Below, piece by piece: positions 9,087 to 63,378 of a stretch of 64,000 nucleotides of DNA (its first letter is position 1; each line of letters opens with the position of its first letter). The position numbers and the translations under genes were made by a program. The DNA lies in the NCBI GenBank assembly GCA_950097015.1, contig CATNEN010000003.1, positions 2,418,001 to 2,482,000 of the forward strand, given 5' to 3'. The notes under the pieces are model-generated. The model was not told the origin of the DNA. It worked only from the letters and a program-made list of their open reading frames with translations, and did no database searches. This stretch comes from Macrostomum hystrix (taxonomy: Eukaryota > Animalia > Platyhelminthes).

Positions 9087-10181
9087 TACTACTATACTGC
9101 TACTATACTATCTACTAGTGGTCCTTGTGAAATTCACATACATACATTACACACATTTACACTGCCACAGAAGAAGGCAAAGAAAAAGGGGCGAGCATGG
9201 GGCGAAAGAGAAAAATGGGGAAAGAAAGGGGAAAAGTGAGAGCATGGCGGCAGTGTCAGAGCACTCTCCTCATGGCTCGCTCCCTGAAGGCAGCCGCAGC
9301 GTTGTTCCGGTCGATGACACCGGCATCAGCAAGCAGGCAGTCCACGTAACGGCGCGTCCTGGCCTGCCCCCGGCGCCAGGGGCCCCGCAGCGTGAGCAGC
9401 AGGACGTCCTGCACTGGTTCAGGGCAGTAGGCTTCCGCGTGGATCACGTGGCCCGCCAGCTGCAGCCGCCGCCGCCGGATGGTCTCGCTGGGTGGTCGCA
9501 GGCCAGCTCGTCGATAGAGGGCCGCGTTCGAGACGACCTCGGGGTAGGAGATGCCGAAGGCCGCGCGCAACAGGCTTCTACAGCGTCTCGGTCAGCGTCC
9601 ACGTCTCGGCGTTGTAGGTCAGGACGGTCTCGACCACCGCCTGAAACGGCCGAGACCTCAGGCGATCTGGCAGCGCGGCGCTCTGCAGAACAACCCGGAC
9701 TGAGCGGAAGGCCGCCCAAGCCAGGCCTCTGCGTCGCGCCAGGTCCTCCTGAACGCTGGGTACCAGCCCCGCCGAGGTACGTGAAACGCGTGCAGCGGGG
9801 TAGAGGGGCCGCGTGACTGTTTGCGCCGCGGCAGGTGATATTGGCAGGCAGCTCCGCTGGCACCGTCAGGACCTCCGTCTTGTCGGTGTTAACAACCAGG
9901 CCGACCGTAGCCGCTACCGCCACCAATCTGTCCAGCATCCGCTGGGCTCCATCCGCCGTAGAGGCCAGCAGCACCAGGTCGTCAGCGTAGCCCAGCAGCG
10001 ACAGTCTCTTCTCTGGATGGCGGCTGCTCGTGCGCCTGCACAGCATGAAGCCGTCGGCGTCGGATGGAAGCGCAGTCCGCAGCACCCAGTTGAGGACCAG
10101 CACGAACAAGAAGGGCGCTAGCGTGTCGCCCTGCAGCACTCCAGATGTTGTACTGAATGGGTCCGACAGCCCGTCGGGCGT
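9087..10181 (-). mobile_element. 5'-truncated, frameshifted non-LTR retrotransposon (RTE-like clade): RT and C-terminal region
   Basis: RT motifs GVLQGDTLAPFLF, YADDL, VGLVVNTDKTE and FTYLG are present. An RTE-type C-terminus (SNAALY…IRRRRLQLAGHV…RRGQARTRRYVD) is in another frame. A (TAG)-rich simple-repeat tail lies at about 9087-9118. Confidence 0.9.
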
Positions 10182-18300: not shown

Positions 18301-21300
18301 GGCTAGACAAGTTTCGCTTCACTCAATCGTGATTTCAGTTTATCAAACATTTATCAGTTTAACTAAACCTTCATAAGAAAATTATCAACAGTCGACCCGC
18401 AGCCAGCGAGTAGGCAATTCTGCCCATTTCGCTGACTTCTGAACACAAACAGACAGATGAATTCACACAGGTGTGTACATCTGCCGTGACTTTCTCATCG
18501 TCAGGCAGTGTACACTCTCTCTGCGCCTCGATGTTGCCCCAAGCCGCCAAAGCCTCAACGATTCAGCAAATATCATCAATCATTCCCGTAGTATCATCAA
18601 TCATTCACACAATATCATCAATCATTCACTCAGTGTCATCAATCATTCAGTCAGTGTCATCAATCATTCACTCAGTGTCATCAATCATTCAGTCAGTATC
18701 ATCAATCATTCACTCAGTGTCATCAATAATTCACTCAGTGTCATCAATCATTCACTCAGTGTCATCAATCATTCAGTCAGTATCATCAATCATTCACTCA
18801 GTATCATCAATCATTCACTCAGTGTCATCAATAATTCACTCAGTGTCATCAATCATTCACTCAGTGTCATCAATAATTCACTCAGTGTCATCAATCATTC
18901 ACTCAGTGTCATCAATAATTCACTCAGTATCATCAATCATTCACTCAGTGTCATCAATCATTCAGTCAGTATCATCAATCATTCACTCAGTGTCATCAAT
19001 CATTCAGTCAGTGTCATCAATCATTCACTCAGTGTCATCAATCATTCAGTCAGTGTCATCAATCATTCACACAATATCATCAATCATTCACTCAGTGTCA
19101 TCAATCATTCAGTCAGTGTCATCAATCATTCACTCAGTGTCATCAATCATTCAGTCAGTATCATCAATCATTCACTCAGTGTCATCAATAATTCACTCAG
19201 TATCATCAATCATTCACTCAGTGTCATCAATCATTCAGTCAGTATCATCAATCATTCACTCAGTATCATCAATCATTCACTCAGTGGTCATCAATCATTC
19301 ACTCAGTATCATCAATCATTCACTCAGTGTCATCAATCATTCAGTCAGTATCATCAATCATTCACTCAGTGTCATCAATCATTCACTCAGTGTCATCAAT
19401 CATTCACTCAGTATCATCAATCATTCACTCAGTGTCATCAATCATTCACTCAGTATCATCAATCATTCACTCAGTATCATCAATCATTCACTCAGTGTCA
19501 TCAATCATTCACGCAGTATTATCATAATACGCAGTATTATCTAATATTTTCGCAAAAATTATATTCTTAAATGCAAAAGCATTGACCCAACATGCAATGG
19601 CATCACTCATTCCCATAACAATTGGCTATTAATTACCCAATATTATCAATAACCCTTAGAAATTCAATTTAAAAGTCACCCGAACAAGACAATTATTCGC
19701 AAATTCAATATTTCATTAGGAGTGGAATATTGTGTAGAGCTCAATTTTAATCCTCAAAATTCCTGCCAACAACCCGAAAGCACCAAGGAAGCCGGCAGTT
19801 CATTCAAGGAGAAGCTGAAAGAGGCCATCAGGGCCATCGGGTATCGGCGAAAGAATGGATTTCGTTATTCGCCTAGGATAATTTGCACCAGCACCGCCGT
19901 TGGCATTGTGACCTACATGGTGAGTTATCTGGCGTAGATGTAAATTCTAGTGGTAATTGTTATTTTTAATAAGGGCTCGGTGGCAGAGTGGCCTAACGCG
20001 TTTGCCTCTCGCACCAAGGTCCCTGAGCTCGATTCCGCGGCGAGGCCACATTCGTTTTGGGCGCAGCCTCGGAGAGAAGGCTTGTGGGCTTGTCGTGCAA
20101 TTTACACCCTCGAGGGCCAACCTCCAGGGCACATTGAGAGTGTACACTGCCTAGCGATGAGAATGTCAGGGCATACGTACACACGTGTGTGTGAGCGTGT
20201 GCCTGCGTACAGTATCTGTGTGCGTGTGTGCTCAGGAGTCAGAGAAATAGGCAGAATTGCCTCCTCGCTGGCTGCGGGTCTGGAGTCACCAAATGATGTG
20301 CCATTGCCCGCAGCCCTCCTGCAATTATTACTATTCCTGGTGATATTGTGTCAGGTGATATTGTGTCAGGTGATATTGTGTCAGGTGATATTGTGTCAGG
20401 TGATATTGTGTCAGGTGATATTGTGTCAGGTGATATTGTGTCAGGTGATATTGTGTCAGGTGATATTGTGTCAGGTGATATTGTGTCAGGTGATATTGTG
20501 TCAGGTGATATTGTGTCAGGTGATATTGTGTCAGGTGATATTGTGTCAGGTGATATTGTGTCAGATGATATTGTGTCAGGTGATATTGTGTCAGGTGATA
20601 TTGTGTCAGGTGATATTGTGTCAGGTGATACTGTGTCAGGTGATATTGTGTCAGATGATATTGTGTCAGGTGATATTGTGTCAGGTGATATTGTGTCAGG
20701 TGATATTATGTCAGGTGATATTGTGTCAGGTGATATTGTGTCGGGTAATATTGTGTCAGGTAATATTGTGTCAGGTGATATTGTGTCAGGTGATATTGTG
20801 TCAGGAAAATGTGAGATTATATCAGTTGAAATAATTTTTCTGGGTAAAGTGTCTCACATAAAAATGTGCCAAGTTTCGTGATTTAGGTAGGTCCATTCTC
20901 AAGCTCACCCCTAAACTGAAATGAAAATTCATCAGAACAGTTTACTTTGAAGACTGCGGTTGCAGACACAAATTGATTTTGTCTGTCAAACAAAATTGGC
21001 TGTCTAGTTTGCTAATTAATTGCCAATCTCAGCGAATTTCGTGCCAAAAAAATTATTTTCAATTCTCTTTCTTTTTATCATCAAACGACGATAGCAAAGA
21101 GTGCCTTAAGCTTTCAATTTTCGTTTCGTGACTTTGGCCTTTTCAATCGCGTTTCTCCTTAGAAGCAGCAGCGTTGATTTCCTCAACCAGATCAGTTTTG
21201 TGTTGGGAATTAATTTCGCTTGTTTATTTTCAGCTTCAAATTGGTGGGGCCCTGTGTGCGACAGGCGGCACAACTGCAGGTTTAGCGATAAGTGATTAAC

Positions 21301-24300
21301 AGTAGGACTACCTAACTATTTTGCCAACCGCTATTTTTTGGCAGCGCCCGAATGCTAACAGCGATGGGTGGTGACTGATTGGTTGACCTACTAGGCGATG
21401 GTGTCCTGTGGTTGAGCTGCGCCTAATATTTAAGCTTGATCAGTGAAATTATGAGAAATTCGCGTCAGGGTGTCCATAGTGGCCTAGTTCCACCTGTTGT
21501 AGCCCTTGAAGGTCCAGCAGTACGTCTAGATAAAGGTAGGTGACCACCGAAGACGGAGGTGATGCAGGCACACTCGGGTGACATGCTGATAAATTTTGAA
21601 GGCATGGCAAGGCCGCACTGAGGCGCAGTGCAAACTCGTGCATAGAGTTGTATGAAGTACACTAGCGCTGATGGGAAAAATCCGACCTTCGGCCAGAACC
21701 ATTGAATATCTCGACGGTCTGAAAAGCTGGCGACTTGGTTCTTGTTTCAGAAATTGTGCGAGAAAAAGTTCCTCCGTGTTCTGGAGCTTCGGTCGTGTGC
21801 TTGCGATGCTCCGTTCGGGTGCAGCCTTGGTAGTTCTATTGTTAAGAGGGTCGGACTTACGACTTGAAGGTCGAGGTTTCGATTCCCGACTACACAGGAA
21901 AAATTTGTGTCCTTTAGCTAGGCACTTAACTCTGCAATGTTTCAGCTCACCCAGCTGTTAAATGGGTACTAGCATTAGCTGGGCAATTGAGGGCGGGTGT
22001 GGCGTCCCCCCAGTCCATGGACTGAACTGCAGCCGTACGCAGCCTTCAGATGCGCCTTTTGACACAATAGGGGCAGGTGTAATACATCTTTATTGATATT
22101 AAAAAGAATAGCACAAAAATTGTTACGATGGAGTAGCGAATCGAACTCCAGACCTTTGATCCAAATATGAGGAAACATGATTTTATTCATAGTGCTTCTT
22201 TATAAATGCATACGCAGGTTCTGTACAGCATCATCAAGGAGGTGTTCTATTGGGTAAAACTGCTGACAGACATTCTAGACTTATTGGAGCGAATAATACG
22301 TGCCATCGGCATTGGAGCCGACACAATGCTGCAGGAGTTGAACGAGGCGCGGGTGTACATCCGGGTCTTCACTGGTGAGTGGCGCTGTGAGTGTCGATTT
22401 GTTTGGTCACAACTCAACAATCGGCAGAGAAGCAGAATTTCTTCCAAATTTTGCGTATCAAAAAATCCATATTTTTGCAGTCTGCTTTTTCATAAGCATC
22501 AGCCTGGTGCTGCTACTCAGTCTATGCAACGGAATCCTCATGATTCTGAACTACAGGTAAGGTGGACTTGAAGTTCTGTCTAGTGTGTTTCTTGCCAATA
22601 TTAGCTGGCTTGCTTAACACCCCAAGCAATGATATTCCCATCTTAGATCGAACATTCTGCAAATCTATCGCGGAGTCTACACCGGATTTCCAACAAGGAA
22701 GGAGCAGACTACTCAACCAACTTATCTGATTGTGAGCTCATATAGATTCATGTTTCGAAACTAACTACTTTCAGTAGGCATGAAAAAGTTAATCGAATTT
22801 CTTGGTTTACAGCTAAGCAACATACGCTACGGCGGTTATCAGATAGCGTTCACAGGCATTGGTGAGTGAAATTTTGCGGAAAGCAAATGTTCTGTTTTGT
22901 AACTCATCTGCTCTCGCTTAAAGTTTTAACAACATAAAAAATAATCTACTAGTGTAGGGAATCGAACTTCCGACCTCTAACAATTTATTAAATCTCCTAA
23001 ACTACCACAGATACTAAATACCTTATTTAGTATTTAGTATTTAGTATCCGTGCAAACTACTCAACTAATAAAAATGAAAATCCAGAACACGAGCTGAAAT
23101 TTTCCGCTTGTGAGAGATACAATTCAGACTACTGAGAACAGTAGAAAAGCAAGGACTTGGCTGCAAAACTCTCACATAACACTAAAAAATATCGCCATAA
23201 AAATGGCAAGCTTAAAAGATACTTCTGTGCACACTGAGAGTGGTGGGAGAGGACTGCGTGTGGCTATGGCTGACTGACGAAGGCAAACAAGCCAGAAACC
23301 GGTCTCGGTCTGCCAGCGCGAGGTTCGTTCCCCACTTTTAGTGTGTTACACCGCTCTCTTTGATGAAACAACTTCCTGAATCACAAAAATATCAGCATCG
23401 TCGAATGTTAATATTCACTGTTGAAATAAAATAACTGTTTATCCAAAATAATTGATGCCACGCACAAAATCTACAGGAATAATTGTACAGCTGGTTCTGG
23501 CCATGTTAGTTCTGCTGTTCGTGTCCTTGGTTCTGTTTGATCCGGTTGGTTTGAAAATCAGAGCCTGGTTTCTAGAGTTTCTCGAGTACTATTGGTGAGT
23601 AGTGGACTGTGGTATGATAGAATTTATTTAGTTTGAACGATATGAAGTTTAAAAATGATAAAATTCGTTACACAGGCCTCTGTCAGTGATCAGTGCAACT
23701 GTACTACTCGTTCAATTCCTATTAGTGAAGTTTGTATTCAACTCGTCATGTTCAACCAATGGCAATGTGGCTGTGGACAACAGGTAAAATTAATCAGCTT
23801 AGCGTAAAGCATGATATTTAGCTTTTGCGTTCGATCCAAATCTTTCGCACTGTCTATGGCATTTCTCGACTGAAACAGAGCTCAATCTGAGGATTAAAGT
23901 TAAGAGTTACAAGAATGCTCAATCTTTTAGAGGGAACTTTAGACCAACTAACTAACCAATTGAGACGAAAATTGGGTAAGATAAAGCATCAGATCCTTTG
24001 GTTAATGGGATCAGTTCTTCTACCCATCACGTGACATACGTATGTACACTCGTGACATCACGTGACATGCGTATGTACACTCGTGACATCACGTGACATA
24101 CAGAAGACACATACTTATCGTTGGTTCTTAATAGAGTAGTCTATGGTTCTTAATCGAGTATTCTGTTTCTTAACTGAGTAGTCTATGGTTCGTAATATAG
24201 TTATTCTATGGTATCGCAGTTCCGGACAACGCATATAGTACTGGTAGATAGCATCTGCGTGGACTTCTGATATTATAAAATGTCAGAACGCAAAAACCAT

Positions 24301-43145: not shown

Positions 43146-46100
43146 TCATTTATCGTGATGCTTTCCTCCTGTCTGCGTATCTGATCCCATTTTTGCCATG
43201 CCGACTGACGTCGCCGAGCCGGACACCTCCCTGTCCAGAGACTTGATCATCTCGCTAAATATGCTCTGCAGCGCCGTGAAGGCTGACACCATGGCCGGGG
43301 CGCCGAAGCCGTGTGTGATGAGGCTGAAGTGAGTCAGGTGGCGCTGAATTCCGGCATCTAGGACAGCGTTTGGCCGAGTGTTGCACAATGGCGAGCGGTC
43401 TTTGTTGAGCATGTCCGTCACTTCTTGGAGTAGGCCCCTGAAGTTTGAGCACAGTTTTTTTTTCAATAACAACTAGGATTTTTCTTTTAGAAATATTGGA
43501 TACTAAAAAAGATAGGATCAAATGAAAATGGGATCATAAGAACATATGGGATCTTTCTTAAATATGGGATCTTTCCTGAATATGGGATCTTTCCTGAATA
43601 TGGGATCTTTCCTGAATATGGGATCTTTCCTGAATATGGGATCTTTCCTGAATATGGGATCTTTCCTGAATATGGGATCTTTCCTGAATATGGGATCTTT
43701 CCTGAATATGGGATCATTCCTGAATATGGAATCTTTCCTGAATATGGGATCTTTCCTGAATATGGGATCTTTCCTGAATATGGGATCTTTCCTGAATATG
43801 GGATCTTTCCTGAATATGGGATCTTTCCTGAATATGGGATCATTCCTGAATATGGAATCTTTCCTGAATATGGAATCTTTCCTGAATATGGGATCTTTCC
43901 TGAATATGGGATCTTTCCTGAATATGGGATCTTTCCTGAATATGGGATCTTTCCTGAATATGGGATCTTTCCTGAATATGGGATCTTTCCTGAATATCAT
44001 GGGATTTTCAAATCACTGGATTTTTCGTAAGTATGGGTTCTCGTCCATTTTAAGATCTCTCATAAATATGGGACTTTTAAAAAAGAATTTTGAGCAAAAT
44101 GAAGCAACTCACTTGGCGGCTACAATCGAACTCTTGCGGTGCTGTAGCTCGGCCGGGTCGGGACCGACGCCGCGGTTGAGAAAATCGGCGCAGGCTCGAG
44201 CTGGGAATTCCGTCTCGCACAGGTAGCTGAAGTCGCGGGCCAGCCTGACCGACTCACCTGACAAATTCAATGGGATCTAAATAGACAATGGGATCTAAAT
44301 AGACAATGGGATCTAAATAGACAATGGGATCTAAATAGACAATGGGATCTAAATAGACAATGGGATCTAAATAGACAATGGGATCTAAATAGACAATGGG
44401 ATCTAAATATACAATGGGATCTAAATAGACAATGGGATCTAAATAGACAATGGGATCTAAATAGACAGTAGAATAAATATACAATTAATGGAATCCTAAT
44501 AAATCATCAATGGGATTCTAAAAAGTCATTGATGGGATCTTAGTTAAGCATCTATGGGATCTTAATAAACAATCGATGGGATCCTAAAAAACCATCAACG
44601 AGATCTTAATAAACAATCGATGGGATCTTAATAAATAATCGATGGGATCTTAAAGAATCATCGATGGGATCTTAATAAAAAACCGATAAGATCTTAATAA
44701 AAAATCTATGGGATCTTAATAAATCTTCGATGAGATCAAACTAAACAATCAATGAAATTTTTACTAACCGTGGGATCTTTTGGAGGGAAAATGGTTTTTA
44801 TGTTACCGGGAATATTTGAACAGAAGCACTCTAAAACTCGGTCATGGATGGTGTTAGAGCGACCGAAAAACCGAATGATTGCTAAAACTTTCCTTTAACT
44901 TTGAGCATAGAAATGAGATAAAAATCTCGCAGCTGCCTTTTCGTCTTTAATTCTTTGTCCATAAGGGGCTAATTTCTACATGAAATCTCACGTTTCTTGA
45001 GTAATTCTCTTTCCAACACCCCAGCAACTCCAGTTATTCTCAACCACTCCCAAAGCAAGATTCTGGGAGACCATAAAACACGCGAACCCATAGAATATCC
45101 CTTTCTTTTAAGTTTTTATTCTCATTGTGAAAAAAGACGAGGAAATTTGATCATTGCTATCAGCATAATCGTATTAGCAGCCCATTTTAATATTTCTTGA
45201 AAATATCCCTTATGAAAAAAGCAGCTTTTTCGTTACCACGAGTCCTTGTTGCTAGGGGTGTGGGGTGCTGCTGAGAAGGTGACAGAAAATCTGCTTTTGG
45301 TGTAACTCAATCTCCCTGATCCTCTCAACTCTGGGGGTAGAGAAAGAGCAGTGGTGACTCATGTTCATCTCATCGTCATTTTACATGGCGTAGAATGTTT
45401 GAAAATTTCAGCAGAAAATTCTGGAAGCCTTACAATACAATACTATTGGACACATTGAGTATGAAAAATAATCTAGAACATGTGGCTTCTAAAAATAACT
45501 AAATTCTCACGTAGAACTACAATTCCTGTGTAGTCTTTCTTTTATTTTTCTAACCTTAACTGTCAAGCCTGTAATATACTATCTCTCGCCTGATCAGTCT
45601 AACATTACTCTATCGCCTCTCGCCCTTCTAAAGTCAAGATCCACTCGCCCAATCGCCTTCTCGCCTCATCTACTTTCCTTCTCGCCCTTTCCAAGTCTCT
45701 CCACTCGCCCTCTCGCCTTCTAAAGTCTCTCTACTCACCCTCTCGCATTCTCGCCCTCTCGCCCATCCAAAGTCTATCCTCTCGCCCTCTCGCCCATCCA
45801 AAGTCTATCCTCTCGCCTTCTCGCCCATCCAAAGTCTATCCTCTCGCCCTCTCGCCCATCCAAAGTCTATCCTCTCGCCCTCTCACCCATCCAAAGTCTA
45901 TCCTCTCGCCCTCTCGCCCATCCAAAGTCTATCCTCTCGCCCTCTCGCCCATTAAAAGTCTATCCTCTCGCCCTCTCGCCCATCCAAAGTCTATACTCTC
46001 GCCCTTTCGCCCATCCAAAGTCTATCCTCTCGCCCTCTCGCCCATTAAAAGTCCATCCTCTCGCCCCCCGCAGTCTCACCTTCAACCAGCGAAGTCAGCA

Positions 46101-47541: not shown

Positions 47542-50500
47542 AGGCGTCGTCGAGACAGCAGCCGCGGCAACCGCAGCAGCAGCAGCGGCAGAGGCTGAAT
47601 GATGATGAACGCCAACCGACGAGGACGAAGCTTGTGGTCCGCCAAAGCCGAGACATTGAAGGCTGTGAAGGTCACCGCTTCGGCGATCCTGTTTAGGGAA
47701 TTATTTGGTGGTTTTTGGATTTAGGTGTCCATCCTTAAAGACACAATGTCCATCCTCAAAGACACAATGTCCATCCTTAAAGACACAATGTCCATCCTCA
47801 AAGACACAGTGTCCATCCTCAAAGACACTATATTCATCCTCAAAGACACTATATTCACCCTAAAAGACACGATGTCCATCCTCAAAGACACAATGTCAAT
47901 CCTCAAAGACACGATGTCAATCCTCAAAGACACAGTGTCAATTCTTAAAGACACAATGTCCATCCTCAAAGACACAATGTCAATCCTCAAAGACACAGTG
48001 TCAATTCTTAAAGACACAATGTCCATCCTTAAAGACACAATGTCCATCCTCAAAGACACAATGTCAATTCTTAAAGACACAATGTCCATCCTCAAAGACA
48101 CAATGTCCATCCTTAAAGACACAATGTCCATCCTTAAAGACACAATGTCCATCCTCAAAGACACAATGTCCATCCTCAAAGACACAATGTCCATCCTTAA
48201 AGACACAATGTCCATCCTCAAAGACACAATGTCCATCCTCAAAGACACTATATTCACCCTAAAAGACACGATGTCCATCCTCAAAGACACAATGTCCATC
48301 CTCAAAGACACTATATTCACCCTAAAAGACACGATGTCCATCCTCAAAGACACAATGTCCATCCTCAAAGACACAATGTCAATTCTTAAAGACACAATGT
48401 CCATCCTTAAAGACACAATGTCCATCCTTAAAGACACAATGTCCATCCTCAAAGACACAATGTCCATCCTCAAAGACACTATATTCACCCTAAAAGACAC
48501 AATGTCCATCCTCAAAGACACAGTGTCCATCCTCAAAGACACTATATTCATCCTCAAAGACACTATATTCACCCTAAAAGACACAATGTCCATCCTCAAA
48601 GACACAGTGTCCATCCTCAAAGACACAGTGTCCATCCTCAAAGACACTATATTCATCCTCAAAGACACTATATTCACCCTAAAAGACACGATGTCCATCC
48701 TCAAAGACACAATGTCCATCCTCAAAGACACGATGTCCATCCTCAAAGACACAGTGTCCATCCTCAAAGACACTATATTCATCCTCAAAGAAACAATGTC
48801 CATCCTCAAAGACACTATATTCATCCTCAAAGACACAATGTCCATCCTCAAAGACACAATGTCAATCCTCAAAGACACGATGTCCATCCTCAAAGACACA
48901 GTGTCCATCCTCAAAGACACGATGTCCAGCCTTAAAGACACAATGTCCATCCTCAAAGACACAATGTGTATCCTCAAAGACACAGTGTCCATCCTCATAG
49001 ACACGATGTCCATCCTCAAAGACACAATGTCAATCCTCAAAGACACAGTGTCCATCCTCAAAGACACAATGTGTATCCTCAAAGACACAGTGTCCATCCT
49101 CATAGACACGATGTCCATCCTCAAAGACACAATGTCAATCCTCAAAGACACAGTGTCAATCCTCAAAGACACAGTGTCAATTCTTAAAGACACAATGTCC
49201 ATCCTCAAAGACACAATGTCAATCCTCAAAGACACAGTGTCAATTCTTAAAGACACAATGTCCATCCTTAAAGACACAATGTCCATCCTCAAAGACACAA
49301 TGTCAATTCTTAAAGACACAATGTCCATCCTCAAAGACACAATGTCCATCCTTAAAGACACAATGTCCATCCTTAAAGACACAATGTCCATCCTCAAAGA
49401 CACAATGTCCATCCTCAAAGACACAATGTCCATCCTTAAAGACACAATGTCCATCCTCAAAGACACAATGTCCATCCTCAAAGACACTATATTTACCCTA
49501 AAAGACACGATGTCCATCCTCAAAGACACAATGTCCATCCTCAAAGACACTATATTCACCCTAAAAGACACGATGTCCATCCTCAAAGACACAATGTCCA
49601 TCCTCAAAGACACAATGTCAATTCTTAAAGACACAATGTCCATCCTTAAAGACACAATGTCCATCCTTAAAGACACAATGTCCATCCTCAAAGACACAAT
49701 GTCCATCCTCAAAGACACTATATTCACCCTAAAAGACACAATGTCCATCCTCAAAGACACAATGTCCATCCTCAAAGACACAGTGTCCATCCTCAAAGAC
49801 ACAATGTCCATCCTCAAAGACACAGTGTCCATCCTCAAAGACACAATGTCCATCCTCAAAGACACAGTGTCCATCCTCAAAGACACAATGTCCATCCTCA
49901 AAGACACTATATTCATCCTCAAAGACACTATATTCATCCTCAAAGACACTATATTCACCCTAAAAGACACGATGTCCATCCTCAAAGACACAATGTCCAT
50001 CCTCAAAGACACAATGTCAATCCTCAAAGACACGATGTCCATCCTCAAAGACACAGTGTCCATCCTCAAAGACACGATGTCCAGCCTTAAAGACACAATG
50101 TCCATCCTCAAAGACACAATGTGTATCCTCAAAGACACAGTGTCCATCCTCATAGACACGATGTCAATCCTCAAAGACACAATTTCCAACCTCAAAGACA
50201 CAATGTCCATCCTTAAAGACACAATGTCCATCCTTAAAGACACAATGTCCATCCTCAAAGACACTATATTCACCCTAAAAGACACAATGTCCATCCTCAA
50301 AGACACAGTGTCCATCCTCAAAGACACTATATTCATCCTCAGAGACACTATATTCATCCTCAAAGAAACAATGTCCATCCTCAAAGACACTATATTCATC
50401 CTCAAAGACACTATATTCACCCTAAAAGACACGATGTCCATCCTCAAAGACACAATGTCCATCCTCAAAGACACAGTGTCCATCCTCAAAGACACTATAT

Positions 50501-52011
50501 TCATCCTCAAAGACACTATATTTACCCTAAAAGACACGATGTCCATCCTCAAAGACACAATGTCAATCCTCAAAGACACGATGTCAATCCTCAAAGACAC
50601 AGTGTCAATTCTTAAAGACACAATGTCCATCCTCAAAGACACAATGTCAATCCTCAAAGACACAGTGTCAATTCTTAAAGACACAATGTCCATCCTTAAA
50701 GACACAATGTCCATCCTCAAAGACACAATGTCAATTCTTAAAGACACAATGTCCATCCTCAAAGACACAATGTCCATCCTTAAAGACACAATGTCCATCC
50801 TTAAAGACACAATGTCCATCCTTAAAGACACGATGTCAATCCTCAAAGACACAATGTCAATCCTCAAAGACACGATGTCAATCCTCAAAGACACGATGTC
50901 CATCCTTAAAGACACGATGTCAATCCTCAAAGACACAATGTCAATCCTCAAAGACACGATGTCAATCCTCAAAGACACAATGTCCATCCTCAAAGACACA
51001 ATGTCAATTCTTAAAGACACAATGTCCATCCTCAAAGACACAATGTCCATCCTCAAAGACACAGTGCCCATCCTCAAAGACACAATGTCCATCCTCAAAG
51101 ACGCAATGTCCATCCTCAAAAACAGAATGTCCATCCTCAAAGACACAATGTCCATCCTCAAAGACACAATGTGTATCCTCAAAGACACAATGTCCATCCT
51201 CAAAGACACAATGTCCATCCTCAAAGACACAGTGCCCATCCTCAAAGACACAATGTCCATCCTCAAAGTCATAATGTCCATCCTCAAAACAGAATGTCCA
51301 CACTTACCTTCTCTCCATAATAGTGTTTATAGAAGCCGGATCCCTGAAAATTTCGAGAGTTTTCAAGGTTAATTGTATTTTTGATAGGCAATTCGCATAC
51401 TAACTACTTGCGACAAAACAAGATAAATAAGTAGTATAAGCTGGTCATGATGTGGATCTAATAAATGTCAAATTGGACGTATCTGAAAGCAGCCAATAAA
51501 ACAAAGCTTTTATAAATGTGACATATCCTAAAATGGGATATTTTAGCCTAATCTCTATGTAGTTAATTTCGTGATTAGAAATAACATCAAAGCAAGCTTT
51601 GAGTCCTTTGATGATATTCACAACCTTCTATATAGAGTTTGTTATACATTTAAATATTAAATCTAGCAGCCATCCTTAGTTTGATCCCAGTCTCAGCGGG
51701 ATCAGGCTCCCTATAATATCCCAATTGTACCCAGCATCAAAAATAGTATATGTAGAGACTGTTTGTCCGCTGTTTCCATTCCCTATAATTATCCACCTGT
51801 CCATATAAAAACTGCGAAGTTTGAGATGTTCAGAAGCTATACCATAAACATGACACCTCGATACAGGTTCACAAAATAAATTGAAATAGGGATAATTTTC
51901 CCAGCGGGGCTGTATATTACGTCCTAAATTTTCATGTCTTTAATACGGACGAAATTTGAGAAAGGTTAAACTCACCTGCCATCCATTTGAGTCGATTGCT
52001 AGAAAAGACAT
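43146..52011 (-). CDS. TFAP2: Transcription factor AP-2
   Basis: Exons: 52011-51976 ([12 protein letters not shown]), optional 51343-51308, 47688-47107 (DRRSGD…[11 protein letters not shown], polyQ), 46598-46544, 46442-46080 ([52 protein letters not shown]), 44257-44113 ([18 protein letters not shown]) and 43437-43146 ([12 protein letters not shown]). All phases are compatible. Confidence 0.95.
43543..43996. repeat. 18-bp minisatellite (atgggatctttcctgaat) in a TFAP2 intron
   Basis: About 25 copies. Confidence 0.97.
44269..44730. repeat. 18-bp minisatellite (aatgggatctaaatagac) with a degenerate continuation, in a TFAP2 intron
   Basis: About 11 clean copies next to the acceptor, followed by decayed gggatc units. 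Confidence 0.9.
45615..46070. repeat. 31-bp minisatellite (ctcgccctctcgcccatccaaagtctatcct) in a TFAP2 intron
   Basis: Tandem copies abut the donor at 46079. Confidence 0.9.
46700..47090. repeat. ~16-bp CT-rich minisatellite (tgtctcatctctcccc) in a TFAP2 intron
   Basis: Degenerate tandem copies. Confidence 0.85.
47725..51290. repeat. 21-bp minisatellite (atgtccatcctcaaagacaca), about 170 copies, in a TFAP2 intron
   Basis: Fills the intron between the donor at 51307 and the acceptor at 47689. Confidence 0.98.
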
Positions 52012-56056: not shown

Positions 56057-56635
56057 TAGAGAGAGGGTAAGAGAGTGAGAGAGGATGTGAGAGAGGATGA
56101 GAGAGTGTGAGAGAGGGTAAGAGAGTGTGAGAGAGGATGAGAGAATGTGAGAGAGGATGAGAGAATGTGAGAGAGGATGAGAGAATGTGAGAGAGGATGA
56201 GAGAGTGCGAGAGAGGATGAGAGAATGTGAGAGAGGATGAGAGAGTGCGAGAGAGGATGAGAGAGTGTGAAAGAGTGAGAGAGAGGATGAGAGAGAGTGA
56301 GAGAGTGCGAGAGAGGATGAGAGAGTGTGAAAGAGTGCGAGAGAGGATGAGAGAGTGTGAGAGAGTGAGAGAGTGCGAGAGAGGATGAGAGAGTGTGAGA
56401 GAGTGAGAGAGTGCGAGAGAGGATGAGAGAGTGTGAAAGAGTGCGAGAGAGGATGAGAGAGTGTGAGAGAGTGTGAGAGAGGATGAGAGAGGATGAGAGA
56501 GTGTGAAAGAGTGCGAGAGAGGATGAGAGAGTGTGAGAGAGTGAGAGAGTGTGAGAGTGGGTGAGAGTGTGAGAGAGGATGAGAGAGTGTGAGAGAGGGA
56601 CAGAGGGAGAGAGAGAGCGGGAGAGAGGAGAGAGG
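56057..56635. repeat. GA-rich repeat (gagaggatgagagagtgtga)n, left block
   Basis: Read directly from the sequence. Confidence 0.95.
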
Positions 56636-56723
56636 ACACTGCCCTTTGAATTAAAAAAATCAAATGTTGAAATTGCTTCCGATATGTATCGAAAAAATTG
56701 AAATCAGGATTCGACCCAAGGCA

Positions 56724-56766
56724 ACTCCAGACGCGTTTCGCTCTTATTGGAGCTCATCAGTAGAGT
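56724..56766 (-). ncRNA. Type I hammerhead ribozyme with a canonical core
   Basis: The minus strand reads ACTCTA-CTGATGA-GCTC-caataa-GAGC-GAA-ACGCGT-C-TGGAGT. Stem I is ACUCUA/UGGAGU, stem II is GCUC/GAGC, and stem III is the minimal palindrome ACGCGU. GUC cleavage is predicted between 56730 and 56729. Confidence 0.85.
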
Positions 56767-56937
56767 CCAGCCTAGCGCTCCAGCCTAGCGCTCTAGACTT
56801 TAGGCTATAGGCGCTTGTTCAAATCCAGCTTTCAATCTCAACATATCGTAATCGATTCGGCAGCGCCCCGCAAATCAATCCATACTCAGTCAACTCCGTG
56901 GCACTGACTCGGTCGTACGAGACGCCGGTGCTGGCCT

Positions 56938-57498
56938 GAGAGAGAGTGAGAGAGGAGAGAGAGTGAGAGAGTGTGAGAGAGGATGAGAGAGTGTGAGAGA
57001 GGATGAGAGAGTGTGAGAGAGGATGAGAGAGTGTGAGAGAGAGTTAGAGAGTGTGAGAGAGGATGAGAGAGTGTGAGAGAGAGTTAGAGAGTGTGAGAGA
57101 GGATGAGAGAGTGTGAGAGAGGATGAGAGAGTGTGAGAGAGAGTTAGAGAGTGTGAGAGAGGATGAGAGAGTGTGAGAGAGGGTGAGAGAGTGTGAGAGA
57201 GAGTTAGAGAGTGTAAGAGAGGATGAGAGAGTGTGAGAGAGGATGAGAGAGTGTGAGAGAGGATGAGAGAGTGTAAGAGAGGATGAGAGAGTGTGAGAGA
57301 GGATGAGAGAGTGTGAGAGAGGATGAGAGTGTGAGAGAGAGTTAGAGAGTGTGAGAGAGGATGAGAGAGTGTGAGAGAGGATGAGAGAGTGTGAGAGAGG
57401 ATGAGAGAGTGTGAGAGAGGATGAGAGAGTGTGAGAGAGGGTGAGAGAGTGTGAGAGAGGATGAGAGAGTGTGAGAGAGTGTGAGAGAGGGTGAGAGG
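56938..57498. repeat. GA-rich repeat (gagaggatgagagagtgtga)n, right block
   Basis: Same unit family as 56057-56635. Confidence 0.95.
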
Positions 57499-59375: not shown

Positions 59376-59820
59376 CTATGGTTCTTAATAAAGTGGTTTA
59401 TTGTTCCTATTCGAGTAGTCTATAGTTCCTATTCGAGTAGTCTATGGTTCCTATTCGAGTAGTCTATAGTTCCTATTCGAGTAGTCTATGGTTCCTATTC
59501 GAGTAGTCTATGGTTCCTATTCGAGTAGTCTATGGTTCCTATTCGAGTAGTCTATGGTTCCTAATAGAGTAGTCTATGGTTCCTAATAGAGTAGTCTATG
59601 GTTCCTATTCGAGTAGTCTATGGTTCCTATTCGAGTAGTCTATGGTTCCTAATAGAGTGGTCTATAGTTCCTATTCGAGTAGTCTATGGTTACTAATCGA
59701 GTAGTCTATGGTTCCTATTCGAGTAGTCTATGGTTCCTAATCGAGTAGTCTATGGTTCCTAATAGAGTGGTCTATAGTTCCTATTCGAGTAGTCTATGGT
59801 TCCTAATAGAGTAGTCTATG
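59376..59820. repeat. 22-bp minisatellite (tagtctatggttcctattcgag)
   Basis: About 20 copies; a short related array lies at about 24122-24210. Confidence 0.95.
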
Positions 59821-61674
59821 GCTTCTAAATGGAACGTTACCTTTCTGAACTTAAACACAGTTCCAACACTTTTTACCATAGACAACCTCTAACTGCATTC
59901 TATGTACTTGTATAAGAATATAAAGCCAGTTCGTAAAATCTATGGACACTTTTGACCATAGAATGTTTTCCATTTTTTTCTAAAATGCAAAGCAGCTTTT
60001 GTTAACTAGATTGCATAGTTACAATTACTGCTCCGATTATTTTATTGTTATATAAAAAGGATTTTAAATTCTAAGATTTTAATCTAATTTAACACTTGGG
60101 CCAAATTAAATATCGATTTTATTTAAATTCCATTCGATACAAAGTCAGTACTCGTCGTAGGCTTGACATATACATTGAACATGAAGACAAGTTTGGACAA
60201 GTTTGCACAGTAGCAGCAGCAGCAGCAGCGGCAGCAGCAGCAGCTACAGACGGCAAAGGAATCGAATACTGCCCAGGGGGCGGACGGTAAAGGAAATCAA
60301 AGATATCTATGTATATACTGACAATCAGTGCAAGTCGATTCAAATTTTTCGCATACAATGGCTGAGCTTATCTTTAGAGAAAATGAAAATCAAAGTTGAC
60401 AAGGACCCAACGCCGGTTAGAAATCGAATCTAATCATTATTTTTAGTGGTCTTTGCAACAGAGAGCTGATATAGTTAGGATGGGCGTGGCTCGACATATC
60501 ATGTAATATTCTTAGACCGCTTTTTATATTAAATAAAGTTGAGCTTACTACTTGAATAAATAATTATGGGTGTTTATCGCGTCCGCTAGATGTATACAGC
60601 TATATCACATTGTATGAAATGACACTGCCTATAAGATACGGTCGATCGTGATTTTGAGAACACTTGATCTACTTTGAGCACAGTTTTCCGGATTAGTTTG
60701 AGATCAGTTTTGAGGATCATTGAGTACAGTTTTAGGGATAATTTTAGTACAGTTTTGAGATCATTGAGAACAGTGTTGGGTATGATTCGAGTACAGTTTC
60801 GTGATAATTTAAGTGCAGTTATCTTCTTGTTTTTACGACTAATATCTTTATTAAAAGAATTTATTTAATCATTTTGATTAGAAGTTAAGTAGGCAGAGAT
60901 TAATAATAATAAACACATATCTCGAAAAACTAATACCGACCCTTCCTAGAACTCAAATCATGTGTTTAACATAAAACAAAGCACAAATCAATAATAAATT
61001 ATCTAAAAATTTGTCATTTGGTGAACGCAAAAAAATTCCTTCTTTAGAGCCCGAAGCTAAAAAACTAGAGCGAAAAATGTAAGACATTTCATTTTACAGC
61101 CTCGAAAATCGACTAGCGCCCCCAACTCTCTGTCTCTCTAAATATATTATCCCCAGCATAATAGCTATAGGATCCCAATCCTCATGGGAGATGCAAATTA
61201 AAGCAGACACTCTACATAATCTACATTTCTTAGGCGGAGAATAGGAAAGTGTGAATAATTTCATACAAGTAATTGGCCATCCTAGAGACCCCACTTCATT
61301 TGACCGGAGGGCAATGACTGCTCCGAGATGATGCCTGGACAACCTCCATTGAATTGTCGACGTCGCCATCCTTCGCGAGACAAAGTTTTCAGGCGTGAAA
61401 TTTTGTTTAATCGACCGACTGGGGATTGGAGAAATTTGTGGAATAACAATGGTTAGAAAATTGGTTTTTGAGTTCCGAAATGACCAATGGATGTCGATTG
61501 GATTCAACAAACCGTGAATTCATCGACTGGAATAACTGTCACAGCTGAGACAACTCAGGCGGTACTGGTTCCAGCTGCAGTGCCTCATTTCTGTAAGAAT
61601 TTGCTGCTATTGTGTTGCCTGCTTCCGCTACAACTGGTTTTCTGATAGGAAACTAATTGCTCAACTGTACAATA

Positions 61675-63378
61675 CGAATCCGAAACTCTACCGAATCCGA
61701 AACTGTACCGAATCCGAAACTCTACCGAATCCGAAACTGTACCGAATCCGAAACTGCACCGAATCCGAAACTGTACCGAATCCGAAACTCTACCGAATCC
61801 GAAACTGTACCGAATCCGAAACTCTACCGAATCCGAAACTGTAACGAATCCGAAACTGTACCGAATCCGAAACTGTACCGAATCCGAAACTCTACCGAAT
61901 CCGAAACTGTACCGAATCCGAAACTCTACCGAATCCGTAACTGTACCGAATCCGAAACTGCACCGAATCCGAAACTCTACCGAATCCGAAACTGTACCGA
62001 ATCCGAAACTGTACCGAATCCGAAACTCTACCGAATCCGAAACTGTAACGAATCCGAAACTGTACCGAATCCGAAACTGTACCGAATCCGAAACTGCACC
62101 GAATCCGAAACTGTACCGAATCCGAAGCTGTACCGAATCCGAAACTCTACCGAATCCGAAACTGTACCGAATCCGAAACTGTACCGAATCCGAAACTGTA
62201 CCGAATCCGAAACTCTACCGAATCCGAAACTGTACCGAATCCGAAACTCTACCGAATCCGAAACTCTACCGAATCCGAATCTATACCGAATCCGAAACTG
62301 TACCGAATCCGAAACTGTACCGAATCCGAAACTATACCGAATCCGAAACAATACCGAATCCGAAACTATACCGAATCCGAAGCTATACCGAATCCGAAAC
62401 TATACCGAATCCGAAACTGTACCGAATCCGAAACTATACCGAATCCGAAACTGTAACGAATCATAAACTGTACCGAATCCGAAACCGTACCGAATCCGAA
62501 ACTCTACCGAATCCGAAACTGTACCGAATCCGAAGCTATACCGAATCCGAAACTCTACCGAATCCGAAACTATACCGAATCTGAAACTGTACCGAATCCG
62601 AAACAATACCGAATCCGAAACTATACCGAATCCGAAGCTATACCGAATCCGAAACTATACCGAATCCGAAACTATACCGAATCCGAAACTATACCGAATC
62701 CGAAACTATACCGAATCCGAAGCTATACCGAATCCGAAACTATACCGAATCCGAAACTATACCGAATCCGAAACTATACCGAATCCGAAGCTATACCGAA
62801 TCCGAAGCTATACCGAATCCGAAACTCTACCGAATCCGAAGCTATACCGAATCCGAAACTATACCGAAACCGAAACAATACCGAATCCGAAACTATACCG
62901 AAACCGAAACAATACCGAATCCGAAACTATACCGAATCCGAAACTATACCGAATCCGAAGCTATACCGAATCCGAAGCTATACCGAATCCGAAACTCTAC
63001 CGAATCCGAAGCTATACCGAATCCGAAACTATACCGAAACCGAAACAATACCGAATCCGAAACTATACCGAATCCGAAACTATACCGAATCCGAAACTGT
63101 ACCGAATCCGAAACAATACCGAATCCGAAACTCTACCGAATCCAAAGCTATACCGAATCCGAAACTATACCGAATCCGAAGCTATACCGAATCCGAAGCC
63201 ATACCGAATCCAAAGCTATACCGAATCCAAAACTATACCGAATCCGAAACTATACCGAATCCGAAACTATACCGAATCCGAAACTATACCGAATCCGAAA
63301 CTATACCGAATCCGAAGCTATACCGAATCCGAAGATATACCGAATCCGAAACTCTACCGAATCCGAAACTCTACCGAA
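61675..63378. repeat. 17-bp minisatellite (ccgaatccgaaactgta)
   Basis: About 100 copies. Confidence 0.98.

Follow-up and report, generated by a model that had tools for sequence, protein, structure and literature searches.

A hammerhead-bearing repeat family inserted in CT-rich simple repeats of Macrostomum hystrix, probably a Penelope-dependent element of the retrozyme type

Metazoan retrozymes without long terminal repeats (non-LTR retrozymes) are non-coding units of 170-400 nucleotides (nt) that carry canonical type I hammerhead ribozymes and give rise to self-paired circular RNAs (PMC7229834). They lie in tandem, from dimers to multimers, and yield linear and circular RNA of unit length; newt satellite 2 and the axolotl retrozyme have units of 331 and 353 nt, respectively (PMC7229834). 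Canonical metazoan type I hammerheads have a helix I of about 6 bp, a helix II of 4 bp with the pair G10.1-C11.1, tertiary elements in loops and bulges, and a helix III of 1-2 bp with a small palindromic loop, and are active as dimers (PMC4209133). Penelope-like elements leave a signature of 5' truncation, partial tandems resembling long terminal repeats (pseudo-LTRs), variable target-site duplications, a bias for simple repeats, and non-autonomous derivatives sharing their 3' ends (PMC8557442), and retrozymes were recently argued to be non-autonomous Penelope derivatives (bioRxiv 10.64898/2026.07.22.740005). Here we describe a hammerhead-bearing island within a GA/CT-rich minisatellite in 64,000 nt of DNA from the flatworm Macrostomum hystrix (contig CATNEN010000003.1, positions 2,418,001 to 2,482,000; hereafter the window). 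We are largely confident that what the island represents is the body of a single old copy, and that the family to which this copy belongs is a young, non-coding and non-autonomous non-LTR element of the retrozyme type that depends on Penelope.

The size of the unit and its single type I hammerhead fit the range of about 150-450 nt given for non-coding retrozymes (PMC7229834). The family resembles metazoan retrozymes in its non-coding unit of about 330 nt, in the single canonical type I hammerhead of each unit, whose tiny palindromic helix III requires dimers, in its highly self-paired predicted RNA, and in sharing its genome with Penelope-like elements. It differs from them in that most copies are dispersed insertions of 0.5-1.6 units, with no arrays of three or more, in a GC content of about 50% (against less than 45%), and in its dedicated CT-rich tail and strict CT-repeat target. 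Circular RNA is described for metazoan retrozymes, whereas the present family is known from DNA sequence. As in Penelope elements and their derivatives, insertions are 5'-truncated, form partial head-to-tail tandems, have target-site duplications of variable length and favour simple repeats (PMC8557442; bioRxiv 10.64898/2026.07.22.740005), and the hammerhead lies about 140-170 nt from the 3' end. Unlike Penelope elements, the family has no coding body, its hammerhead is canonical rather than the minimal Penelope variant (which a Penelope-like element of the same genome, at locus L056, does carry), and its targets are CT-rich mini- and microsatellites instead of the (TA)n, (CA)n and (C)n reported for Penelope (PMC8557442).

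The schistosome elements Sm-alpha and Sj-alpha (cited in PMC2770079) are similar in unit size and in having A- and B-box-like motifs. Their hammerheads share the present layout of a 6-bp helix Ia, an asymmetric internal loop, a 4-bp helix Ib, and a 4-bp helix II with an A-rich hexaloop. Such a likeness in layout to Sm-alpha had also been proposed in an earlier, sequence-only reading of the window. In contrast to the schistosome elements, helix III here lacks a real loop, the boxes flank the hammerhead, and the tRNA-likeness fails standard detectors. The best covariance match was Rfam Hammerhead_HH9 (RF02275), a conserved amniote intronic hammerhead whose helix II and loop 2 read GCUC-CAAAAA-GAGC where the window copy has GCUC-CAAUAA-GAGC. 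HH9 is single-copy and intronic, and its helix III comprises 3 bp closed by a loop of 5 nt, whereas the present motif belongs to a repeat and scored 34.5-42.1 bits against a gathering score of 52.

The hammerhead motif and its repeat family

By sequence inspection, a complete type I hammerhead of 55 nt lies on the minus strand of the island (Table 1), reading from 5' to 3' AGGC-UGG-ACUCUA, CUGAUGA, GCUC-CAAUAA-GAGC, GAAA, CGCG, UC, UGGAGU-U-GCCU. A GUC cleavage triplet accompanies CUGAUGA and GAAA, completing the conserved core. Helix I has 6 bp (ACUCUA/UGGAGU, including one G-U pair) and is extended by four further pairs beyond a 3 x 1 internal loop; helix II (GCUC/GAGC, 4 bp) begins with a G-C pair, and its hexaloop is A-rich. 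ACGCGU is a perfect 6-nt palindrome, and helix III comprises 2 bp at most. Each part of the hammerhead named in the sequence-only reading was present on the minus strand where it had been placed, and the predicted cleavage site is likewise 56730/56729. Judged by its 6-bp helix I and 4-bp helix II, the motif is the canonical metazoan type I form and not the minimal Penelope variant, and its loop and bulge elements suggest a tertiary contact between loop 2 and the internal loop. With helix III almost absent, cleavage would be expected to take place chiefly in dimers formed by adjacent units.

The composite pattern CTGATGA-N(8-30)-GAAACGCGTC had a single occurrence in the window, and 100 dinucleotide shuffles contained none. 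A looser core, CTGANGA...GAAA, was at chance level (6 found, 6.0 expected). As the bare core is this frequent by chance, it is the helices and the conservation in the family that carry weight.

The genome (220 Mb in 42 contigs) was found to hold at least 49 matches to the island, and copies of the element are scattered over at least 25 contigs and set in unrelated repeats. The exact hammerhead pattern was present at 73 sites, compared with 0 for a reversed-pattern control; the exact 23-mer directly 3' of the cleavage site occurred in 80 copies, and the 3' 95 nt gave 133 first-look candidates. The unit could be defined because some loci carry two hammerheads 336 nt apart: it measures 336 nt, of which 285 nt form the body and 51 nt a CT-rich tail that carries a diagnostic CCCGC and is followed by the start of the next body. 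Two hammerheads at a spacing of 323-336 nt were seen at a few loci only (L015, L016 and, at G000:C25:3259677-3260043, L020). The unit contains no open reading frame (ORF), the longest stop-free stretch in a unit trimer being 74 amino acids (aa), and its earlier description as non-coding therefore stands.

Copies were 97-98.7% identical in pairwise comparison, and 30 of them differed from their majority sequence at about 1.3% per site. The window copy was the most diverged, at about 94% identity to the others; on these sequence distances it is the oldest copy, and the family is young. CUGAUGA was invariant in 36 aligned copies, where the one core change was C17 to G. Loop 2 varied among CAAUAA, CAAAAA and CAACAA, and the internal loop of helix I was UGG x U in the window copy and UAG x U in the family. 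CpG sites were not hypermutable. No informative compensatory covariation was found among the aligned copies, because they are too alike, and their variation consisted of neutral-looking singletons.

At locus L031 (G000:C38:21519000-21528999) five 5'-truncated copies stand at alternating spacings of about 1589 and 685 bp. These owe their number not to retrotransposition but to a DNA-level tandem duplication of 2.28 kb that holds two insertions.

Near-identical pieces of the element were also met in sequencing runs labelled as two other organisms (one a 157-nt contig with a single mismatch) and, at low share, in freshwater and sediment metagenomes. Therefore, either the family is common to close relatives or DNA of the animal is present in those samples. 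A metagenome scan with a 36-nt hammerhead pattern gave 0 matches.

Insertion anatomy and target preference

Fifty insertions were mapped onto the unrolled unit. All except one ended at unit positions 317-336, the last 20 nt of the CT tail. Twenty were 5'-truncated, with lengths of 0.51-0.93 units, and the other 30 measured 1.05-1.58 units, running past unit position 1 into another unit in front, where they reach the tail and in some cases also the 3' body. In these long copies the sequence upstream of position 1 was always another unit and never anything else. The 5' starts were scattered, with hot spots at about position 289, where the tail begins, and at 154-164, where CTCTA immediately precedes CUGAUGA. 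Both hot spots are rich in CT, and microhomology with the CT-rich target is seen at the junctions.

A flank of at least 85% pyrimidine on the element's sense strand was present on one or both sides of 42 of the 50 insertions, and purine-rich flanks were found at none. By comparison, 0.6-0.8% of 80-nt segments of the 64-kb window reach this pyrimidine content on a given strand. The CT strand of the target always ran parallel to the sense strand of the element. The flanking repeats varied by locus (10-mers, 17-20-mers and others) and continued on both sides of the element, and must therefore have existed before the insertion. The preference for microsatellites that had been proposed is supported, here for CT/GA-rich micro- and minisatellites (42/50 against about 0.7% of background segments).

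Two insertions, at loci L007 and L054, sit at the edge of unique DNA. At L007 the target-site duplication measures about 80 bp, and its two copies show 2 differences; at L054 it is about 140 bp, and the 5' junction has the microhomology CTGAT. Target-site duplications could not be read elsewhere because the targets are tandem repeats. The family has been retrotransposed: its 3' end is fixed, copies are 5'-truncated or form partial tandems, the target was cut with a stagger, and CT repeats in one orientation are strictly preferred. Mobility, which the sequence-only reading had claimed, is borne out by the 73-133 copies, the 5' truncations, the common 3' end and the two unambiguous target-site duplications. 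The copies are mostly dispersed insertions of 0.5-1.6 units and not tandem arrays.

At locus L048 (G000:C25:8227701-8233731) a reversed tRNA- or SINE-like sequence (SINE, short interspersed element) abuts the 5' end of the insertion, about 100 nt upstream of a truncated copy. It contains the complement of a GGTTCGATTCC T-loop box.

Predicted RNA, proposed mechanism and competing explanations

Folding of the sense monomer, from cleavage site to cleavage site, gave a rod of -112.7 kcal/mol (z = -3.29) that was not equalled in stability by any of 100 shuffles, whereas the antisense strand was unremarkable (z = -1.15). The predicted sense monomer thus has the stable, highly self-paired fold of non-LTR retrozymes. 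The flanking inverted repeat described earlier also formed in the minimum-energy fold. In RNAcofold a dimer of two hammerheads was 5.8 kcal/mol more stable than two monomers; this value was set aside as evidence, since a true double hammerhead is a kissing interaction and not a nested one. A base other than C directly preceded the 3'-side 23-mer in 2 of 80 copies, namely L007 and C2:7353327, the latter with T at this position. The 5' end of L007 is the nucleotide right after C17, preceded by a few untemplated bases. Such starts at the predicted cleavage site are suggestive of cleavage in vivo, a hint and not a proof.

The retrozyme- and Penelope-like character first suggested for this island agrees with the insertion hallmarks of Penelope (PMC8557442) and with a hammerhead that fits the dimer-type form (PMC4209133; PMC7229834). 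We propose that an RNA longer than one unit, either multimeric or circular, would be reverse-transcribed in trans by a Penelope-like protein with reverse transcriptase (RT) and GIY-YIG endonuclease. The endonuclease would nick the GA-rich strand of the target, and the nicked strand could anneal to the CU-rich tail of the RNA and prime synthesis of complementary DNA (cDNA). The 5' junction may be closed as soon as the cDNA arrives at a CT-rich microhomology, often CTCTC, CTCTA or CTGAT; this would account for the concentration of insertion lengths around 1.14 and 1.5 units and for the scarcity of longer ones. A distant second nick would produce target-site duplications of variable and sometimes long extent. 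The hammerhead would trim multimeric transcripts to unit length, and a cellular ligase may circularise the unit RNA; by analogy with other retrozymes, circularisation by tRNA ligase is plausible (PMC7229834). Only the few loci with two hammerheads (e.g. L020, L015) could release a monomer of 336 nt.

Several observations weigh against a Penelope-dependent retrozyme. No Rfam covariance model matched anywhere in the 64-kb window at gathering thresholds. The search with Rfam that the sequence-only reading had suggested did return Hammerhead_HH9 as a full-length match by E-value (34.5 bits, E 3.7e-7), but this lies below the gathering score of 52, as do the younger copies at 38.7-42.1 bits; the shortfall is due to the deletion of loop 3, the sole gap in the HH9 alignment. 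Selection on the hammerhead core was considered but dropped as an argument, as the core was not significantly less mutated than the rest of the unit (1 mutation among copies, about 5 expected; permutation P = 0.054). The lack of arrays of at least three units among the mapped copies is a poor fit to the tandem definition of retrozymes. Furthermore, in 77 of 80 copies the sequence continues uninterrupted across the cleavage site, and as only 2 of 80 may start there, the templates were mostly uncleaved or religated. The 15 public runs that contain the element include none on record as RNA. The four examined were contigs and document presence only; having no joints, ends or strand, they have no bearing on transcription, cleavage or circles. 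Finally, the CT tail was not shared by the Penelope 3' regions at loci L055 and L056, in which an autonomous partner with the same tail was accordingly not found; these regions and the unit have in common only CT-rich DNA and a hammerhead core.

Penelope-like elements are nonetheless part of this genome. A Pfam search for GIY-YIG returned two Penelope endonuclease fragments, and a protein search with a Penelope fragment spanning RT thumb and GIY-YIG gave at least 134 matches in the genome, including open frames of 666-750 aa. None of the 134 matches lay within 10 kb of any of the 73 hammerhead or 80 23-mer sites. An inverted pair at G000:C8:2492698-2496918, with open frames of 666 and 750 aa, are candidates for intact autonomous elements. 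At L056:865-2100 (G000:C33:1846951-1848186) a 5'-truncated Penelope-like ORF, open for 313 aa, encodes the RT thumb and a GIY-YIG endonuclease. Its 3' untranslated region holds a minimal Penelope hammerhead, CUGAAGA-U-GGCUAGUUUUAGCC-GAAACGCGUC, with an unpaired base before a long helix II and with a short helix I; it ends in the same GAAACGCGUC as the element and is directly followed by an array of the 20-nt unit ATCCACARCAATCCAACAGA. The copy at L056 represents a second Penelope family, adjoined by another repeat. The fragment at L055:1090-2019 (G000:C39:105298-106227), open for 310 aa, is a Neptune-like Penelope endonuclease with CxxxCxxC upstream of GIY-YIG. In the window itself, an ORF fragment at 9444-10139 on the minus strand contains the reverse-transcriptase motif YADD (...LGYADDLVLLA...). 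It is probably a remnant of a non-LTR element of the long interspersed (LINE) type, another possible source of reverse transcriptase in this genome.

A different origin would be a tRNA-derived SINE of the Sm-alpha type transcribed by RNA polymerase III (Pol III), in which the hammerhead lies between A and B boxes at the position of the anticodon loop and the Pol III RNA is retrotransposed. Sm-alpha has Pol III boxes. Both Sm-alpha and Sj-alpha are SINE-like elements with hammerheads (PMC2770079), and in our own comparison the young copies match the A-box consensus TRGCNNAGTGG at 10 of 11 positions (TAGCCTAATGG). An exact B-box, GGTTCGAATCC (11/11), follows about 69 nt downstream, where 0.04 are expected in 3.3 kb, and 9 nt after it comes a run of six T. 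Yet ARAGORN found no tRNA at default settings and, at 80% stringency with introns allowed, only weak models on both strands; the Rfam tRNA model matched nothing on the sense strand and gave 15 bits (E 2.8) on the antisense strand; and no genuine tRNA gene with this D-arm and T-loop was found in the genome. The arm with the B-box-like motif pairs with its own complement in the rod, so that each strand looks B-box-like, and in the window copy both boxes are mutated. In nearly all copies the stretch from the B-box-like motif to the CT tail is interrupted by a T6 run followed by a T5 run. Every copy has the CT tail, and with these runs upstream of it a Pol III transcript would usually stop before the part needed for insertion. 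On account of the unsupportive tRNA detectors and these T runs, we consider a Pol III SINE unlikely and treat it as a minority explanation. A combination of both origins, in which a tRNA-promoter-type unit like Sm-alpha, its hammerhead at the anticodon-loop position, was captured by Penelope machinery and its CU-rich tail pairs with the GA strand of CT/GA minisatellites and so picks the integration site, is a tentative proposal that we hold to be possible, if doubtful. If it were true, integration would be RNA-guided and repeat-specific, and the very long target-site duplications would lengthen the repeat arrays in the process.

Strong 5' truncation and hammerheads close to the 3' end are features of Penelope insertions (PMC8557442), as would be expected if the copies were merely truncated 3' ends (pseudo-LTR tails) of an autonomous Penelope-like element. 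However, 30 of the 50 insertions extend beyond the 5' end of the unit, and what they enter there is the CT tail and 3' body of another unit in front of it, never other sequence, and no hammerhead or 23-mer site (0/73 and 0/80) has a Penelope ORF match within 10 kb; we regard this explanation as very improbable. We give practically no credence to a chance hammerhead-like motif in a satellite island duplicated at the DNA level, with no RNA intermediate. The truncated copies at L031 did multiply by segmental tandem duplication of 2.28 kb, and the window holds the loose core pattern by itself no more often than chance predicts, but the full motif is absent from shuffles and from the reversed-pattern control. 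Dispersal over at least 25 contigs with a common 3' end, graded 5' truncation and target-site duplications also contradicts such an origin.

Read as a Penelope-dependent retrozyme, the element is of a known kind and founds no new category. Among non-autonomous retroelements that bear a ribozyme it is a clean and young example, with a divergence of about 1.3%, and its insertion anatomy can be read directly from a fixed CT tail, strict parallel orientation, 5' microhomology and target-site duplications of 80-140 bp. It also offers a usable natural system for how Penelope-type enzymes choose simple repeats, by recognition of target DNA or by pairing of the RNA tail, for whether multimeric or circular RNA serves as template, and for what a dimer-type hammerhead contributes.

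Other parts of the insertion and of the window

The features of the insertion are collected in Table 1. The insertion was 91% identical to the young copy at locus L002. Tandem Repeats Finder (TRF) placed blocks of 20-nt GA/CT minisatellite on both flanks, at 56059-56627 and 56937-57497. The sequence-only reading was correct that the island lies inside a GA repeat on both sides, but its extent of 298 nt was too small and omitted the 51-nt CT-rich tail. The CT-rich stretch upstream of the body is probably part of the tail of a preceding unit, which in this old copy blends with the target satellite; in younger copies the diagnostic tail is visible upstream of the body. A 13-nt tandem duplication repeats the 5' strand of helix Ib, and the window copy is the only row with this insertion in the alignment of copies.

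Table 1. Features of the insertion and its flanks, in window coordinates
Feature	Position	Strand	Basis or remark
Whole insertion, 399 nt = 1.19 units	56591..56989	-	BLAST of window against unrolled unit
CT-rich 3' tail with family-diagnostic CCCGC; merges into target repeat	56591..56639	-	alignment to unit
Upstream CT-rich stretch matching tail of preceding unit (partial-tandem, pseudo-LTR-like start)	56938..56989	-	
13-nt tandem duplication, GAGCGCTAGGCTG x2	56768..56793	-	TRF; private to window copy
Hammerhead motif overall	56719..56773	-	sequence; Hammerhead_HH9 match 34.5 bits, E 3.7e-7
Helix Ib 5' strand AGGC	56773-56770	-	sequence
Internal loop UGG (opposite U)	56769-56767	-	sequence
Helix Ia 5' strand ACUCUA	56766-56761	-	sequence
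Catalytic core strand CUGAUGA (C3-A9)	56760-56754	-	sequence; same in all 36 aligned copies
Helix II GCUC/GAGC with loop 2 CAAUAA	56753-56740	-	sequence
GAAA	56739-56736	-	sequence
Palindromic mini helix III ACGCGU	56736-56731	-	sequence
C17	56730	-	predicted cleavage 56730/56729
Helix I 3' strand UGGAGU	56729-56724	-	then U, then GCCU at 56722-56719
3' arm of long hairpin with hammerhead at tip	56698..56722	-	sequence, fold
B-box-like 11-mer, GGGTCGAATCC in window copy, GGTTCGAATCC in family	56707-56717	-	
T6 run just past 3' arm	56692-56697	-	
5' arm of long hairpin	56810-56835	-	sequence, fold
Degenerate A-box-like stretch; family version TAGCCTAATGG	56796-56807	-	
Downstream target, 20-nt GA/CT-rich minisatellite	56059..56590	.	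TRF
Upstream target, similar 20-nt GA/CT-rich minisatellite	56990..57497	.	TRF

One gene of the window is SRFBP1-like and has its closest matches in protein clusters made up mainly of arthropod sequences. The window is unusually rich in long minisatellite arrays (47721-51372; 18471-19570; 20348-20881; 43518-44226; 59376-59821; 61657-62466). One of them spans 3.6 kb in repeats of about 30 nt, and the array at 59376-59821 has a repeat length of 22 nt. These arrays yield long spurious ORFs on both strands.

A second minimal hammerhead, unrelated to the first, lies on the plus strand of the window at 23262-23312. It reads GGCUGA-CUGACGA-AGGCAAACAAGCCA-GAAA-CCGG-UC-UCGGUC, with the palindrome ACCGGU as helix III.

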